Position numbers and translations under genes: made by a program. 64,000 nt of DNA, from contig CP075495.1 of NCBI GenBank assembly GCA_021613535.1, positions 11,594,001 to 11,658,000 of the forward strand, read 5' to 3'. This stretch comes from Adineta vaga. Lineage: Eukaryota; Animalia; Rotifera. The notes below the pieces were generated by a model that did not search any database, had not been told where the DNA came from, and saw only the letters and a list, made by a program, of their open reading frames with translations. Shown piece by piece: positions 26,166 to 34,990 of this stretch; the first letter of the stretch is position 1, and the number at the start of each line of letters is the position of its first letter.

Positions 26166-27732
26166 ATGTGGATATTTGGATACGGTTCAATTGTATGGAA
26201 ACCAGATTTTCGATATATTAATCGAATTGAAGGACATATCAAAGGTTTTATTCGACGATTTTGGCAACTATCTGAAGATCATCGTGGTGTACCAGGAAAT
26301 GTAATTAATACCCATTTATAGTTGATTTCATTGATGATCTATTTTATCATAGCCAGGACGAGTGGTTACATTGATTCCGACAAAAAATCAATCTGTAAGT
26401 TATAAACAGAATCTTCAAAAAAGATTTTAAATTTATTTTTCATGTCAAGATGAAAATTAAATGAAAAATATATAGTAAAATGATTATTTAGTCTTATTCG
26501 AGAGAATATTGTTACCATTATATATGTTGACATGAATTTTGAGGTTGGATAAGAATATCTTAATTATCTTATATTGTTACCTTCAACTGTCAACATTAAT
26601 TATCCTAATTAATTACCTAATCAAAACCTTTTTATCCAGATGAGAGCAAAATTAGAATAGATCTCTCTTTCTTTTTATCTTACCACAAGTTAGAATAGTT
26701 TAGTTTGAAAGAAAAAAAGAAAGTAATATTTCATCTTATATATTATTAACATACTTCTGGTTATGTATCATTGACGACATTGTTAAAGGCTGAATATTAC
26801 TTAATCAATTGTCTGGTTTTATTTACAAAGTTCGTTGAGTTTAGAAGCGATAGTTTATAAGATTTTTATCTCTGTCATATTAAAGACTCGATTGTCAACT
26901 TCATACGAGCGAGATTAATGAATTCACTGTGTCTATATTTATTGTTGATGGATTTTATTTTAAGAAATTCTTTTTTTCTTCCACTCGAAGGAAAATGTTC
27001 TCAGTCAAAAGGACAAAATACAATGAATGTTTTGATTTTTGAGCAATGAATCTTTTCGATGTTTTGACATTGATCGGCAGTTGTATATATTAGCATTTTT
27101 ATGAGTTAAACGGTACAAGAGAACTAAAACAAAACGAAATTCATTCGATATGTTTCTAATCTCTATTTTCTGAAGAGAAAAAAATATAAATTTAGAAATT
27201 GTTTATATTCATAATTATCTCATCGAAATATGATTCAAAAGATATAAGAAACTTGAGTAATTAAGAAAGAAGAAAAACCAAATACGTCATTGAAATTTTT
27301 ATAAATCGCATAACAGATGAAAAGTGTTTTTCTTCTCATCCCTTGTTCTACTTTTCTATCCTTTAGGATTGTGTGTATGGTGCTGCTTATGAAATTTCAA
27401 ATGAAGATGAAATTAGCGTACGACACGTACTTGATGTACGTGAAAAAGATGGTTATACAATTATCGAAACAGTATTCTATCCAAATAATAATGCAGAAAA
27501 AGAAAGAACTTGTTATACATATATGGCTCAATCTAATAATCCATTTTGGGGTGGTGATGCACCGATCGATCAAATTGCAAAACAAATTGCACAAGCACAT
27601 GGACCAAGTGGCTCAAATCGGGAATATTTATTTAAATTAGTAGATGCGATACGAATGATAACATCATTACCTGATGAACATCTCTTTGCATTGGATCAGT
27701 TAGTGAAGGATCATTTAGCGAAGGATGAATAG
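26166..27732 (+). CDS. Glutathione-specific gamma-glutamylcyclotransferase ChaC (CHAC2-like), 3 exons with a ~970 nt second intron
   Basis: [13 protein letters not shown]...[16 protein letters not shown]|PGRVVTL|...LDVREKDGY...[13 protein letters not shown]. Confidence 0.93.
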
Positions 27733-28572
27733 TATAGAAGACGATGTTGATGTCTCTCATCTTTTTTTCTGTTTTGTCTGAGTAATATTTTTTAATAGCA
27801 ATAAACATTCCTTCTTTATTTTTTTTTATATCTATCTTATCAAAAAAGAAAAAGAAAAGTGCATTAGATGAAAGAAGTTCATGAATGAAAATATAATGCC
27901 GTTAAAATCTCGGTTTTAAATACATAGAAGACTGAAAAGAAAAAGACGAGAAAAGCTGACATAACAAATTTCATGATGCGTATTTAACTTTTACTGGAAG
28001 TAAAGATATGCGTTGAGTCGCCAATAGAGAACGAGATATATGAATAAAAGGAAACGAAAAATTATAATTATCATCATCATTATCTTTTCAAAATACTTAG
28101 TAACTGAAAGAAAAGAAATGAAGAAGAAGAAGAAGAAGACGACGAAGAAGAAGAAAAAGAGAAAGATGAAAACATGATAGAAAAGAAGGAAATAGCACGA
28201 TACTGCAAAGAAAAGATGAGCGTTTGCACCATCAACAACTCAACACTCTATCATTACGTTCAATTACTATAATTGTATATCAAAACAGAGAATCATTTTT
28301 CAACGACAACCAGGTAAACATTTCATAAACGAACTTGATGGGCGTCACTTAATAGAAGAGGTTTTCTTTACCTACTCATTTTCGTCTACAAATGCCAAGA
28401 TAAATATTGATTCAATAATTACTAATGAGAATTTTACATCTGTAGACGACTTTGTTCCGGTCCATGAATTAATAAAACATACTAACTCTATAAATAAACA
28501 TATAGCTTTAATATATTTACCATGTCAAATCTGATTGACAAGTGTTTCCTCTTTGTTTAGATTCTAATCAAC

Positions 28573-31500
28573 ATGGCATATCAATTTAGATCGACTTATT
28601 CCGGGTAAGTAATAAAACACACCTCATTTTCGTGCTTTACAAATAAGCAGCTTTGTCTAAACACGATCGATAGTTATATTGTGTAAAAATTCTATTTAAA
28701 ACATAATATGAGTAGATATCTACACATGATACTAATACACTTTTTTGAAATTGTTTACGTTCATCATTTTATTGCTAGAAGAATTCTTCAAGCATAAAAC
28801 ATATTTATGTGGCTTTGTTAACATTATAAATCATGAATAATCAAAATAGAATCTTACGGAAAGTAAATTCTTCGATACATTATAGGTAAGTGCATTGAAA
28901 TAGTTACTTCAGAAATCAAAAGCTTAGGTGTATGTTAGAAACATGACTTTTCTGCTTCGTTTATATTTATTGTATTACTTAGTTTCATTTGCTGAAAAAT
29001 TGTTTGAGTGTAAATAAGGAAGTTAAAATAAGTAAAATTAACCAGAAAAAAAATAATGAAAGAGAATAGAACTATGATTATCATTGATAAGAGCAACATG
29101 TTCATGTTGATTTATTGTAATATTCGAAAAAAATGCGATCAACATTAACTACGCCACGACGACTAACAACTCCTGCAAGATGGCAAAGGTAAATTGTATC
29201 ATTCATTATCTTTTAATTCAAAACCAATTTCAAATGTTCGATTCCATGGATAATAGACATTTTCTACTTGAAAATGAGTCGTTATTTGATTTGCATAGGA
29301 AATAAAACCTTTTGAAATAAATCTTTCATAGAAAAGTAAGTCATTGTTAAGTTTATCCAATGGATCAAGTGAAACAGTGTTCAAATAAAATGAAAGAATT
29401 TGTCGTAAATTAGCTTGATATTGAACATCTTCAAGAAAACGATATAATGTAAATCGAGAATTTTCTTGCATTGTAGAATTTCGATAATAGTTTAATAGAA
29501 CACCATTACTTAAGCAGGTTCCTAATGTATTACCATTTGTATTCCATCCTGCATAAGCATACGTTCCTAATTGAGTTTGATTTAATATCCATTGTGAAAA
29601 ACATCGATCACCACCGTTACTATAACGTACATCAGCATAGACAATAATAGATTGATTTTTTGGTATATTCAATGGGGTATAATCTTCACATGTTTGTATT
29701 TCTGTTGCTTCATGTTGTGTTTCTGTTGACCAGTTATTAACTAGAACAAGAATATCAGCTGTTGTTTCATTTGTATAATCGATGTAATGTCCTCCAACAG
29801 CAGTTATTTGTTTCAGAACACTTTCATTGAGTGGTGCGCCTTCATAATTTGGTATATAATTTTGTGTTGTTACATTTCGATAATGAACTGTAAATGTTGG
29901 TTTTGATAGTTGTTTATTATTTACAACAATTTGACTGAGTATAGCTAAGCTAACTTCATCAGCACCAGGATAGATATTAACTTTTGAACTTAGATTAAGT
30001 GAAGGATCATTAATTAATTGAACTAATTTTCTTTCTTCAGCTTTATTTAATCCATATGCAGCATTATCATCCAGAGTTAACCAAATATGTTCGAAATAAA
30101 GTTGAGTATATTCATGTAATAGTGTATAAGTTAGATTATAATTTCGTGCTCGTCGCCATATAAATTCTTGAAGAATATCTCCGGGAATTTGTTTTTCTAA
30201 CTGTTGAACTTGTTCTTCATCGATTGGATTATGAAGTACAGCATATCGGTCAGTATAGAATGACCACAGATAGATAAGACGACCATACGTTGCCCAATAA
30301 TCAGGTTCTTCAAAATCTCCATTATATGCTGGAATACGCATAATGACAGAACTAAGATAGATTTGAATTTTAGAACCAAATTCTTGTTTAAATCCAATTA
30401 ATCTTCGTAATCGAGAATTTAATTCATCGAACGTCGTATTACTTAATCGACTATTGATCAGACCACCATAGACAAGTTGTTCCGTTGAAATTAATAACGA
30501 ACAAGATGATGAAATTATACATGATGTACTGATTTGTTCATGTAACCATTGAAAGAGTTGATTTGTATCTGCTGGTTGTTTCCAATGACTAATCATTTCT
30601 AAAGATGGTGTTATTAAAGTAAAATCATTTTGAATTAGACGAGCAAGATTTAAGACAATAGATCTTGTGGTAAAACGTTCATCGAGTGGAATGAAAAGAA
30701 TGGTTGATTGTGAAGAACATTCGACAATTATGAGAAATAAAAAGAGAAATGATCGAACTAGATTCATTGTAAAAATTTAGATGAATACTGAAACTTGATT
30801 AGGTTTTATTTTGATAACATTTTGATGAGAAAATCATCAGATGATACATTATAAGGCCCAAAGAAAAATAATCATTACAAATATTTAATCGCTTTTTCTT
30901 TGATATCTATTCATTTTGTTTTATAAACCATGTTTCAATTTGACTTTTTTCATTTTAAGTACAAGTGCAGACAGTCGAGATCTTCCGTCGACGCCTCAAA
31001 ATCGACATGTTTCATTGGCTAATATTGCAACAGCATTTTTAACTGAGCGAAAGTCTTCTGCACGTCGACTAAGTAGTGGTCGTCGAAAAAAACGTTTAGC
31101 AAATCAAGAAAAAAAATCATCGAATTCAAGGCTTCAATCAAGTTTTCCCAATGGACTTAACGATCTATTCGGACAACGTTTATCATCCGAAAACATGGAG
31201 CATAATATTGCGGCAATGTTTATGACCACGAGTAGTGGTGCAGGTGCCAATAACAAACATCGTGCAACTCTGGTAATAAAAGTTTGCTTTCTTAGATCTT
31301 GACAACATGTAAACTCTCGAACAAATAGATCAGTTATTTCTCTGACATTGACATTGATTGTGAGTATTTCAAAGAATAATAGTAGCTAAAAATAGAACAC
31401 TTGAATTAAATACGAAAGATGCAACTGAGAATATTTCATCAATTCAGATAATTTTATCTGATTCCAAAGAATTTACAATGAATTTAACAATTATTCTTAC

Positions 31501-33963
31501 AGTTTATTTTCTCCTATTCCATTGAATCTTGTTCATTTACGCCAAAAAATCCGTGTCAAAACAAGAAAGTCAGGAAATACCTTTTCTTATTCCTATCTGT
31601 CAAAATGTCTTTCTTTTGTCGTTTTATGTCAATGAAACCCTTCTCTATTATGCTATTAGTACGAAATAATTAATTCTGATATCCTAATCAAGTACTATTA
31701 GTATTAAAAAAGAGATAAATTTCCATAATTTAGACATTGTTTCTTTCTTCTTCGTGTTGTATTCACTTAAAACAATTAAGTAAAAATGGAATCTTCCTTT
31801 TGCTTTTCAAGAAAGGAAATCATGTGAAAAAAAAGGAAAGAACACGTTTGTTGTCAAAGGAAATTGACTTTGTTGTTCGTGGATGGATTCATCTTTTTGT
31901 GTCAATATCTGTTCTTTAAATTGGTTTTAATTTATTCTGACAAGCATTACACACACAGACACACTTCATCTGTCTATGCGTAGGACATGAAGATTGAAAG
32001 TCTAACTAGCGTACACTATTTTCTCTTGTTTTTTCTTCTTCTCTTTGTCATATTCTGCCAATCTTCAAACCTAACACATAATCACACCATTTCTTCCGTA
32101 GAAAGACAATGTGGCACATCAGCAGGGACGAGAGTAGCGGAAAAAGAGATAGAAAGCGCGTGCAAAGAAAGAAAAAGAGAAAAAAGAATCAGAGAATTTC
32201 TTTAGATGAAATTATTCGTAATAGATTTCCATATAAGCAAAAAAAAGGAAAGAACGATATACTAATCAATAGTAATTAGAAGTAAAAGTATGCAGTATCA
32301 ACATCGAAAATTATCGAGTACCAATGATCAACCTATGTTAAGTCAATTAGTATCGATGAAAGAAAATAGTATTAAATCAACAGGATCTGTACGAATTCAT
32401 CTTAATATCCCAGGAGAACAATCGCGACGTTCATCATTTGATTTCAATCTCACTTCGCCATTACCAACTACAGTTAAATTAACAAAAAATCGTTTAACAA
32501 CAACTATTCCCAAATCGATATCAACTGATATTGATGGTGGACGACGAACGACGCGTTTTAGTAACGTTAGTAGTAGTTATGCTCAGTTTTTAAAACAACG
32601 TGATATGGATAAAGTTAAAAAGATTGTAAGTGTGATAGGATGAAATAGATTACAAATAATATAGGTTTTCTTTTCTATTTCTATGATCTGATTTTTCATT
32701 TCGTTTTTAGTTATCACAAGAAGATCAACGTCTACTATTATCATCGAGTGAATGGGTTGAAGATGTTAAAGATACTGATCCCTATGTTTCAGTCCTTAGT
32801 CGACTTGGTAAATATTGGAAAAGAGAAGAATTTGTTCCTAAATAATTTTCTTTCCTATTTGTATAGGTGAAGCAATACAAGATTCAGAAACGTTGGTCGA
32901 ATTTGTTAAAAAATCATTTTCCATTGTTACAAATACATGTAATGTATAGATAAAAATTGAAATAGATGTGAATACATAGTGTCAATTCGATTTCCGTCGA
33001 GATAGATCTCGTATGTGAACAGAAAAATACAATCAATTGAATTTCTCTATTCCAGATGATTAAGAAATAATTGTAAAAATCTATTTAACAAAGCTTAGAA
33101 ACACAAACTCACTATTAATAAGGAGATTGAATGAGAAGGAAAAAAAACCAATATCCAATCTTTTTTCTATTTCTAATCTATATGAAGATGAGATTTTCAA
33201 TTTATTTTCTATTTAATGATGATATTAAACTAATGAAATAGAAAAACTATTTATAAACTATGAAGTATCATACCTGAAGAGAAGTTTTAAGCGACGTATC
33301 AGAAGTAGATAATATCTTCTTTATTTTCTAGACGGAGCGACTGCTTTATTAGCATTGTTAACTGTTTTTCAAGTGATACTTTTTTTTATTGGTATGTAAA
33401 TCGAAATTATTTTATTGGTTTTTATGAAGAAAAAAAAAACATACACGAGAAATGAATTTAGGTGTTAAATATTTAAATGATTGTCCAGTACAACCTAATC
33501 TACCGGTTTATTTACTTGTTGCTGGTTCGATGGGTCTTGTACGTCTATTAAATTTATTATGGAAACAATTTCGTCGACGACGTTTAAGAAAATTAGAAGG
33601 CGTAGAACTTGATCAAGAAGAAGAAACAGAAGATAGTGTGTATTTGACATGTGTCTGTTTTGAACTTAGTTATTATATTTCAAATTTTCTTATTTAGATG
33701 GTTCTGGTTTTACAGATGCTGTTTTAAATCTCTTTCTCCTTGCGTGGTTCATTGTAGGACAATTTTGGACTTGGAGAAGTTTCATGCCAAATTTCGAATT
33801 TGGATTAGAAAATCCAGAGAAATATTGTCATAAAAACGTTTATATATTTGCGCTTGTACATATCGCTTTGGTTTATGTCATGTTTCTTGCAGTTATTTTG
33901 TTTTTTATAGCGCTTACATGTTGTGCGACATTTCCACATTTAATTGTCAAAGCACCACGTTGA
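28573..33963 (+). CDS. TMEM272-like multi-pass membrane protein; long isoform (exons 28573-28604 and 30960-31272) and alternative first exon 32290-32625, both joining at 32711
   Basis: CPVQPNLPVYLLVAG, NLFLLAWFIVGQFWTW and YCHKNVYIFA motifs; splice phases of the upstream exons are compatible (phase 2 across 28605-30959, phase 0 into 32711). The downstream part is well supported; the upstream linkage is inferred. Confidence 0.72.
29199..30767 (-). CDS. DUF4127-family-like secreted protein, intronless, bacterial type
   Basis: 522 aa uninterrupted ORF; signal peptide; IPLDERF, LVYGGLINSR, YPGADE, ADVRYSNGGD, YAGWNTNGNTLG and YPWNRTFEI motifs recalled from bacterial DUF4127 proteins. Confidence 0.82.
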   Translation of the reverse strand: MNLVRSFLFLFLIIVECSSQSTILFIPLDERFTTRSIVLNLARLIQNDFTLITPSLEMISHWKQPADTNQLFQWLHEQISTSCIISSSCSLLISTEQLVYGGLINSRLSNTTFDELNSRLRRLIGFKQEFGSKIQIYLSSVIMRIPAYNGDFEEPDYWATYGRLIYLWSFYTDRYAVLHNPIDEEQVQQLEKQIPGDILQEFIWRRARNYNLTYTLLHEYTQLYFEHIWLTLDDNAAYGLNKAEERKLVQLINDPSLNLSSKVNIYPGADEVSLAILSQIVVNNKQLSKPTFTVHYRNVTTQNYIPNYEGAPLNESVLKQITAVGGHYIDYTNETTADILVLVNNWSTETQHEATEIQTCEDYTPLNIPKNQSIIVYADVRYSNGGDRCFSQWILNQTQLGTYAYAGWNTNGNTLGTCLSNGVLLNYYRNSTMQENSRFTLYRFLEDVQYQANLRQILSFYLNTVSLDPLDKLNNDLLFYERFISKGFISYANQITTHFQVENVYYPWNRTFEIGFELKDNE

Positions 33964-34477
33964 ATAAAAAGCATTCAGATATTCTGGAATTTTATCAGAA
34001 GGAAGATGAACACATAAGTTCATATTTCATACGATTATAAGTATTTTCTTGTCTTTATGAAAGTAGATTATCTTGCTTATGTTATCTGTCATTTGTCAGC
34101 AGTTAAATCATCCTCGAGTAATAGTGACGTATGATGATCAATAAATAATAAATGATCTTGATTGCCATGTTGTCAGTGAACATAAAATAAGATTCCGGCA
34201 TAAATACATATTATTTTTCTTCATCACTTCACTCTCTGTAACATAAACTATAAATATCTAATTCGTTCGATCGACAAAGAAGTTATAAACTGAATTCTTT
34301 CATAGGCAACAAGTTACCTTTATATATCTACTGCTCAACTCAATCCTAGACAATTCGATTGGATTATTATTTATTTATGATCAAAGTAGTTCGTTGAAGA
34401 ATGACACTGAATTACATAGCAACATAATTTTCTTATTTATCTATCGTTTTTTTTCTTTCATTACAAAAATCCATTGA

Positions 34478-34990
34478 ATGATATCTACAAAAAATGATGA
34501 TTGTCAAAATGCAAAAAAGCGTCTTCTCAAAGATCTTCTTCAACTTCAAACATTAACTCTTCAAGATGGTGTTACAGCAGCACCATTGAATGAATCTAAT
34601 CTATTCGAATGGCAAGCTATCATCATCGGACCTGATAAAACGCCATTTGAAGGTGGTCTTTACGAATTACATCTAGCCATTCCATGTGATTATCCAGTAC
34701 ATGCTCCAAGAGTTCGATTTAAAACTGAAATATTCCATCCAAATATCTATGAAAATGGAGATGTTTGTATTGATATATTACAAGATCAATGGAGTGAGGT
34801 GATGAGTATTGAGAAAATTTTAATTTCAATCCGTAGTTTATTAAATGAACCGAATGTGAATAGTCCAGCAAATACAGAAGCAGCTCTTTTATATAAAGAA
34901 CATCGAAATGAATTTGATCATCGAATACGTCATGATATTGACAAACAAATAAATAACAAATTACTAACAGTTGATACTATTTTCAATTGA
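34478..34990 (+). CDS. Ubiquitin-conjugating enzyme E2 (Rad6/Ubc7-related), intronless
   Basis: KKRLLKDL, GPDKTPFEGG, FHPNIYENGDVCIDIL (HPN plus catalytic Cys), EPNVNSPAN. Confidence 0.92.
   Translation: MISTKNDDCQNAKKRLLKDLLQLQTLTLQDGVTAAPLNESNLFEWQAIIIGPDKTPFEGGLYELHLAIPCDYPVHAPRVRFKTEIFHPNIYENGDVCIDILQDQWSEVMSIEKILISIRSLLNEPNVNSPANTEAALLYKEHRNEFDHRIRHDIDKQINNKLLTVDTIFN

Follow-up and report, generated by a model that had tools for sequence, protein, structure and literature searches.

A DUF4127 gene of probable non-animal origin lies antisense within an older host intron in the bdelloid rotifer Adineta vaga

Introduction

Genes nested within the introns of other genes are widespread in animal genomes. 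Those that lie antisense form a complete transcription unit on the opposite strand of the host intron and have polyadenylation of their own. The same arrangement is described here for the bdelloid rotifer Adineta vaga, where, in a window of 64,000 nucleotides (nt) read on the forward strand (assembly GCA_021613535.1, contig CP075495.1, positions 11,594,001 to 11,658,000), an intronless gene of the protein family DUF4127 (PF13552) occupies an intron of a plus-strand gene, hereafter the host gene. This pair differs from the nested genes of other animals in that the guest is probably foreign and in that alternative promoters of the host avoid spanning it. Acquisition of genes by bdelloids is established, about 10% of their genes having been attributed to non-metazoan sources (bioRxiv 10.1101/2021.09.04.458992), and the DUF4127 gene adds a well-anchored example rather than a new kind of phenomenon. 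It shares with the other horizontally acquired genes of bdelloids the non-metazoan relatives, native gene neighbours, host-like composition, expression and conservation across genera; it differs from them in having stayed intronless, in having a conserved, gene-dense block and not a repeat-rich region as its surroundings, and in an insertion site that can be read against an empty intron of the ohnologous gene. An earlier description of this gene was not found in a search that did not cover the supplementary gene lists of bdelloid studies.

The closest described proteins belong to bacteria and protists. Bacterial members of PF13552 (Paenibacillus, Bacillus, Natronospora) share with the rotifer protein the full-length profile match, the motifs PLDER, GADE and YAGWNT together with about 45 other invariant residues, and the predicted fold. 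In the bacterial sister clade the proteins are about 490 amino acids (aa) long, have neither a hydrophobic leader nor the glycosylation sequons N110, N211 and N509, contain 0-3 cysteines and are encoded in operons with NanE, ROK kinase, RpiR and ABC transporter genes, whereas the rotifer protein carries a leader, 11 sequons and five conserved cysteines and is encoded by a solitary gene. The protist forms (Acanthamoeba castellanii ACA1_255750, Pelomyxa schiedti, Mastigella, Ceratiomyxa, Gefionella and Paratrimastix) share with it a predicted signal peptide, a length of 520-560 aa, three sequons and the major clade; they are 35-42% identical to it, and the rotifer clade adds sequons N258, N298 and N396 and cysteines 83, 89, 360 and 389.

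The explanation that we favor as a whole, at a probability of roughly 0.6, is that a foreign, eukaryote-type secreted DUF4127 gene was captured before the sampled bdelloid genera diverged and became nested in a host intron older than itself. A non-animal gene would have entered the bdelloid lineage and settled antisense in a gene for a multi-pass membrane protein, within the first coding intron of a single one of its two ohnologous copies. Because the eukaryote-type branch of the family has the leader and the shared sequons, the donor was most likely a protist-like eukaryote, or at least a lineage already making the secreted form, and the rotifer's own additions would be no more than a few sequons and two probable disulfide pairs. 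The protein would then enter the secretory pathway, be N-glycosylated and act in the gut lumen or the lysosome as a carbohydrate-active enzyme.

The nested gene and its host

An initial annotation, made from the sequence alone, had predicted an intronless minus-strand open reading frame (ORF) of 522 aa and had assigned it to DUF4127 by its PLDxR, GADE and YAGWNT motifs. The ORF is present, RNA contigs run along it without splice joints, and the family assignment is confirmed by a Pfam search in which it matched positions 1-488 of the 489 of the PF13552 profile (E 7.7e-111; 371.5 bits, where the curated gathering threshold is 27 bits). A search of NCBIfam with the same ORF matched no model, and a look-up of the contig gave no record of its protein. 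The motifs, at residues 27-31 (PLDER), 268-271 (GADE) and 405-410 (YAGWNT), are invariant or nearly invariant columns of a 60-sequence alignment and all are found in the rotifer protein; the same alignment has no His, Cys or Lys that is invariant across the family. The gene is under purifying selection and has a host-like, AT-adapted composition: the ratio of nonsynonymous to synonymous rates against bdelloid orthologs is 0.08-0.21, and GC content is 0.305 in the ORF and 0.134 at its third codon positions (GC3), in a window of about 30% GC. It is a single-copy gene of the 100.8-Mb, six-contig genome, at 11.62 Mb of a 16.3-Mb chromosome-scale contig (contig 2, of which the window covers 11.59-11.66 Mb).

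RNA contigs from four public runs were aligned to 27300-33200 of the window, GT..AG joints and poly(A) ends marking them as RNA (Table 1). Over DUF4127 the contigs span 28948-30745 with zero splice joints, and a T-run at the end of one of them, before 28948, is a poly(A) tail on the minus strand, about 20 nt downstream of an AATAAA. DUF4127 is an independent transcription unit, intronless and polyadenylated. The spacer between its ATG and host exon 2 is just 192 nt long (30768-30959) and contains one block that is 83% identical to A. ricciae over 52 nt and 86% identical to Rotaria over 42 nt, the remainder being unalignable; the block is a candidate promoter or 5' untranslated region (UTR) of DUF4127, possibly bidirectional with a proximal start of the host gene.

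Table 1. Features of the DUF4127 gene and its host gene, in positions of the window
Feature	Position	Strand	Evidence
DUF4127 coding sequence, 522 aa plus stop, intronless	29199..30767	-	ORF, Pfam, collinear RNA contigs
Predicted signal peptide, about residues 1-20	30708..30767	-	hydropathy
DUF4127 3' UTR; AATAAA at 28966-28971, poly(A) site near 28948	28948..29198	-	T-run of contig X6 record 25
Conserved block, candidate DUF4127 promoter or 5' UTR	30795..30846		cross-genus identity
Host distal 5' UTR exon; start is a minimum, as the contig begins there	28209..28313	+	GT..AG joint 28311>28559 of X3 record 18
Host micro-exon, ATG at 28573 plus 29 nt (MAYQFRSTYS, then split Gly codon), phase 2	28561..28604	+	spliced contig
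Host intron, 2,355 nt, enclosing the entire DUF4127 transcription unit	28605..30959	+	joint 28603>30959, GT..AG
Host exon 2, 104 codons past the split Gly codon	30960..31272	+	joints 28603>30959 and 31271>32710
Alternative first host exon, ATG at 32290	32240..32625	+	joint 32625>32711 in X1-X3
Downstream host exons (32711-32807, 32867-32938, 33332 onward with more introns)	32711..33960	+	joint 32806>32866, loose end 32938>33332, hydropathy

The host gene had been predicted to splice from 28604 to 30960 in phase 2 and in frame, downstream of a UTR intron at 28314-28560. Indeed, this is the structure of an RNA contig of 237 nt (X3 record 18) that consists of 28209-28311, a 45-nt middle piece (28560-28604) and 30959-31047; its GT..AG joints resolve to introns 28314-28560 and 28605-30959, and the GG/T junction between micro-exon and exon 2 forms an in-frame Gly codon. 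Other contigs join 31272 to 32711 and 32807 to 32867, with a loose end at 32938>33332, and a scan of 27733-29198 gave no micro-exon candidate other than 28573-28604. The alternative first exon is spliced to its acceptor in three runs, and transcripts that begin there leave DUF4127 outside their span; it is 87.5% identical in amino acids to A. ricciae, as against 77% for exon 2. At least 3-4 hydrophobic 19-mers are encoded by the last host exons, which makes a membrane protein a reasonable reading of the host product. The host exons matched no family when searched one by one against Pfam, and because of this exon-by-exon search a family may have been missed.

Contigs from two runs (X1 and X2) start or change at 30933-30957 and take in 3-27 nt of the intron before exon 2, the X1 contig running on for 255 nt that have no match in the window. 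Such ends could arise from transcription that starts proximally, from RNA left unspliced, from a divergent allele or from a chimeric contig. With a proximal start possible, the host gene has two or three 5' ends, of which the distal one alone spans DUF4127. The loose ends of RNA contigs at 30933, 32343, 32503 and 33078 have no match within the window.

The joint that reveals the nesting is of low depth and occurs in a single contig, and independent support was therefore sought. The order UQ_con, host gene, DUF4127, ChaC, glycogen phosphorylase is the same in the window, in A. ricciae and in Rotaria, and the host gene and DUF4127 of Didymodactylos are arranged head-to-head; synteny in related rotifers had been proposed as a check in the initial annotation. 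DUF4127 is intronless in all four bdelloid genes compared; the neighbouring genes are intron-rich. The host UTR exon is 76% identical in A. ricciae, and its donor is kept both there and in Rotaria. Beyond the 3' end of DUF4127, A. ricciae has a micro-exon that keeps the ATG, the length of 32 nt and all three splice sites (MTYQFRPAYS), and that of Rotaria has the same 32 nt, an ATG and a GT donor (MTHHFGSKDS). By tblastn, host exon 2 is also matched in A. ricciae, Rotaria and Didymodactylos, as well as in the ohnolog on chromosome 5. Three findings thus bear out the predicted antisense nesting: the spliced transcript, the conservation in two other genera and the empty intron of the ohnolog.

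An empty intron in the ohnologous gene

The ohnolog of the host gene on chromosome 5 (contig 5) is 76% identical to it in the last exon, and all host exons are present in the 20 kb examined. Its start exon (C5:7916276-7916307) is 32 nt long and encodes MSRQFGSMYS followed by a split Gly codon; the intron that follows has a GTATGT donor, a length of 738 nt and a CAG acceptor, and exon 2 is joined in the same phase. No remnant of DUF4127 was detected in the ohnologous region by tblastn, even at E 1. Since both copies have the phase-2 intron in the same phase and DUF4127 is in only one of them, the intron predates the split of the ohnologs, and the empty copy therefore makes the intron older than its guest. 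Either DUF4127 reached the intron once the duplication had taken place or the other copy lost it cleanly, and insertion into an intron, as the initial annotation had it, is supported under both scenarios. The empty intron means that the foreign gene occupies an existing intron and that the host gene did not grow around it. If this is true, the locus would keep a rare view, before and after, of the landing site of a foreign gene in an animal genome.

Relatives and origin of the DUF4127 gene

A word-index search returned 789 DUF4127 homologs. Bdelloid or bdelloid-like sequences make up the first 34 (56-100% identity), those with names coming from A. ricciae, three Rotaria species and Didymodactylos (56-80%, with A. 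ricciae at 80%). Next come eukaryote-like sequences at 42-47% and the bacterium Natronospora at 44%, and protists follow at 33-42% (Ceratiomyxa, Mastigella, Pelomyxa, Acanthamoeba, Gefionella, Paratrimastix and MMETSP protists). The check for named animals covered the best 120 of the 789 homologs, in a database where about three quarters of the entries are nameless, and no named animal other than bdelloids occurs among these 120 or in a second search that started from P0037, a sister sequence. The named relatives are bdelloids, bacteria and protists; closest homologs that were broadly metazoan, the outcome named in advance as contrary to a foreign origin, are not what the searches gave.

A maximum-likelihood tree was built from 44 sequences and rooted with distant Bacillota and other bacteria drawn from 81 GTDB loci. 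In it the bdelloids are monophyletic (support 100/99) and lie inside a clade with P0037, P0035/P0036 and P0042 (100/98). This clade and the protist clade together form a eukaryote-type clade, which is sister to Natronospora-like bacteria (100/100), with Acidobacteriota and Bacillota outside. Syntaxin, RGS and DEP genes flank the gene for P0042, in which a 32-nt GT..AG intron directly follows PLDER and an upstream exon encodes a signal peptide; P0036 adjoins a gene for a mitochondrial-type IDH3-alpha-like protein (E 1.5e-104 to the human protein), and P0040 lies near a RabGAP gene. The P0042 gene (L007:2380-2470) had been mis-called as N-terminally truncated, the upstream exon encoding the signal peptide and PLDER. 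The approximately unbiased (AU) test rejects a single clade of bdelloids and Natronospora-like bacteria (delta log likelihood 32.8, p 0.0038). With the bdelloids nested among sequences of eukaryotic genomic context and with this rejection by the AU test, a bacterial sister group is not upheld. The initial annotation therefore stands in giving the gene a non-metazoan origin and is not supported in calling it bacterial-type.

These results support horizontal acquisition of the bdelloid DUF4127 gene from a non-metazoan source, and, as far as the tree and the sequence features go, it appears best described as a eukaryote-type secreted DUF4127 rather than a bacterial gene remodelled by the rotifer. 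The gene is integrated and expressed, as seen in the spliced host transcript that bridges it, in its polyadenylation and in synteny in four genera. The case also carries a warning, namely that a Pfam family alone is no ground for the label "bacterial".

Secretory features

The initial annotation had described the protein as remodelled for secretion, and a secretory-type N-terminus with conserved sequons is found. A hydrophobic stretch with a Kyte-Doolittle maximum of 3.67 over 9 aa precedes the first conserved strand, that of PLDER, and residues 1-20 are the sole low-confidence part of the structure model (predicted local distance difference test, pLDDT, 49-60). In all bdelloid and protist forms a hydrophobic leader lies 20-55 residues before the first strand; the Natronospora-like bacteria have none and start directly at that strand (MKTILYIPLDERF). 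The rotifer protein contains exactly 11 N-x-S/T sequons, the same 11 as were listed at first, where the shuffled sequence gives 6.4 +/- 2.3 (p 0.044), and for 8 or 9 of them at least 30 of 32 bdelloid orthologs have the sequon as well. The ratio of observed sequons to those expected by shuffling is 1.8 in bdelloids (32 sequences), 1.5 in the eukaryotic forms and 0.9 in the cytoplasmic bacterial forms.

Sequons N110, N211 and N509 are common to the bdelloids and 20-23 of 24 protist forms and occur in none of six sister bacteria, which have F/T, Q and K/Q, respectively, in place of the Asn and keep the Thr at +2. By comparison of these sequences, the three appear to be shared derived changes that would be sensible only in a eukaryotic secretory pathway. 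Since the leader and these three sequons are shared with protist forms, the secretory features are mostly inherited and predate the rotifer. Remodelling within bdelloids thus holds for their three specific sequons and four specific cysteines, and not for the leader or the shared sequons. Given the likely secreted eukaryotic source, a gene can arrive already suited to the animal secretory pathway.

Structure and possible function

The AlphaFold model, obtained as the initial annotation had suggested, is confident (pLDDT 93.8; predicted template-modelling (TM) score 0.92) and alpha/beta, with about 12 strands, and it places the majority of the invariant Asp, Glu, Arg and Asn residues at or just past strand ends. 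It matches a DUF4127 cluster of the ESM Atlas with a TM score of 0.89 over 487 residues, and feature and shape searches of that atlas returned DUF4127 clusters only. Sequence and profile searches of the PDB gave nothing below E 0.2, and a relation to a known CAZy family, by fold or sequence, was not found in the PDB, Foldseek or VIA-align searches. In VIA-align, several chains of the ribokinase/PdxK and SGNH types scored Z 7-8. A ribokinase-like kinase was considered because of motifs such as NGGD, which precedes a helix, and was set aside because these Z values are in the chance range and an ATP-dependent kinase is ill-suited to a secreted glycoprotein. A search of the accessible literature gave no mention of DUF4127 or PF13552, and the family thus appears to be unstudied.

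Relatives occur in 575 species-level bacterial genomes, and the neighbours of DUF4127 were counted at 81 bacterial loci. The genes found there encode an ABC sugar transporter (binding protein and permeases; 34-36 loci), the N-acetylmannosamine (ManNAc)-6-phosphate epimerase NanE (32), a ROK kinase (30), an RpiR regulator (30), a GFO/IDH/MocA oxidoreductase (19), FAD_oxidored (17), GH130 (13), a set of amidohydrolase, DgaE-like protein and KDGP aldolase (11-14), a xylose-isomerase-like TIM barrel (10), GHL10 (9) and GH3 (5). NanE, ROK or RpiR is present at 49 of the 81 loci, and 70 have at least one of NanE, ROK, RpiR, the ABC sugar transporter, GFO/IDH/MocA, FAD_oxidored and DgaE/KDGP aldolase. 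The order in Natronospora is RpiR, DUF4127, ROK and a NagA-like amidohydrolase.

Because bacterial DUF4127 genes sit in catabolic clusters of the ManNAc/N-acetylglucosamine (GlcNAc) type, we propose that DUF4127 may be a carbohydrate-active enzyme on hexosamine-containing glycans; the substrate class as specified is tentative, with the odds against it about two to one. By analogy with the same gene neighbourhoods, a role on bacterial food or glycans is plausible. A wider proposal, in which DUF4127 would form a carbohydrate-active enzyme family not described before, its fold differing from all solved structures and its secreted form spread among phagotrophic eukaryotes and caught from a eukaryote by the bdelloid ancestor, is possible but a little more doubtful still. 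The family is large, with at least 575 bacterial species and many protists, and is without a structural relative, and its association with genes of the ManNAc/GlcNAc type offers a starting point for the study of its function.

The eukaryote that carries P0036 has a cyanobacterial-type GlcNAc 2-epimerase gene as a neighbour. On a eukaryote-like contig (L008:1238-4233), the DUF4127 gene nearest the bdelloid clade is divergently arranged with an N-acylglucosamine 2-epimerase gene whose product is closest to the Anabaena/Nostoc enzymes (E 1e-150), an arrangement suggestive of a two-gene module for amino sugars in a eukaryote. In a Paenibacillus-type context (L020, L021, L028, L033, L035, L038 and similar loci), DUF4127 is accompanied by an amidohydrolase, a SelA-like (DgaE-type) lyase, KDGP aldolase, a PfkB kinase, a GntR regulator, GH130 and a solute-binding protein; this set resembles a glucosaminate or mannosyl-glycan pathway and has a phage-tail-like (Baseplate_J) gene set upstream. 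The 919-aa protein P0139 is a fusion of DUF4127 with PF12831 (FAD_oxidored), a hint of a functional link.

Alternative explanations

Direct transfer from a bacterium to a bdelloid, with leader, sequons and cysteines gained later and the likeness to protist forms due to convergence or to a common unsampled bacterial donor group, is the alternative that accounts for the overwhelmingly bacterial membership of the family, for Natronospora being the best named non-rotifer match by identity, and for the intronless gene; some bacteria (Acidobacteriota) do have N-terminal hydrophobic leaders, and the sister sequences P0035 and P0037 may themselves come from such a donor. We nevertheless regard it as unlikely, since the tree places the bdelloids among sequences with eukaryotic genomic context, the AU test rejects their union with the nearest bacterial clade, and the three Asn changes that create sequons in most protist forms are found in no sister bacterium, a sequon having no selective meaning in a cytoplasmic bacterial protein. 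Vertical inheritance of an old secreted eukaryotic DUF4127, kept in bdelloids and scattered protists and lost in the other sampled animals, would agree with a eukaryote-type clade that spans Amoebozoa, a malawimonad, a metamonad and MMETSP protists, and with a gene that goes far back within bdelloids and whose composition is fully adapted. It would, however, demand many independent metazoan losses, given that neither search returned a named non-bdelloid animal, and it sits badly with a gene that is intronless in four genera among intron-rich neighbours and that only one of the two ohnologous loci contains, within an intron that is empty at the other; with a sizeable fraction of bdelloid genes already attributed to non-metazoan sources, as cited above, we consider it improbable. 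That the ORF is microbial contamination or part of a mis-joined contig is suggested only by the foreign gene family, and is hardly credible for a gene far inside a chromosome-scale contig, within an intron bridged by a spliced transcript, with a poly(A) tail, an AATAAA and a host-like GC3, and with synteny in independent assemblies of four genera.

Capture of a eukaryote-type secreted gene into an older intron thus remains our preferred explanation, and the following points weigh against it. The joint of 28604 to 30960 comes from one contig of one run at a depth of 3.4, the host gene has two other 5' starts so that only the isoform from the distal promoter spans DUF4127, and a micro-exon of the same length was looked for in Didymodactylos and not found. 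The union of the bdelloid-containing clade with the protist clade has a support of just 90/86, and the group tested by AU was picked after the tree was seen. P0036 is assigned to a eukaryote by a single neighbour gene, P0035 and P0037, the closest sister sequences, may be of eukaryotic or of bacterial origin, and the absence of the gene from other animals concerns named matches only, most entries being nameless. The signal peptide is a prediction from hydropathy and position. As for the enzymatic role, Foldseek matches in the PDB (GT-B glycosyltransferases and S-adenosylhomocysteine hydrolases) reached a TM score of at most 0.22 and were not counted as informative, VIA-align against 48,161 chains reached no Z above 8.5, its matches being generic flavodoxin-, ribokinase- and SGNH-like alpha/beta domains, a catalytic mechanism cannot be named from the structure model, and the functional proposal draws on the gene neighbours of bacterial homologs whose identity is only about 30%.

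Neighbouring genes

The last exon of ChaC, which encodes a gamma-glutamylcyclotransferase-like protein, lies at 27373-27818, with a poly(A) site at 27818. ChaC is a single-copy gene in the genome, and both ChaC and UQ_con (34409-34951) are absent from the ohnologous block of contig 5.

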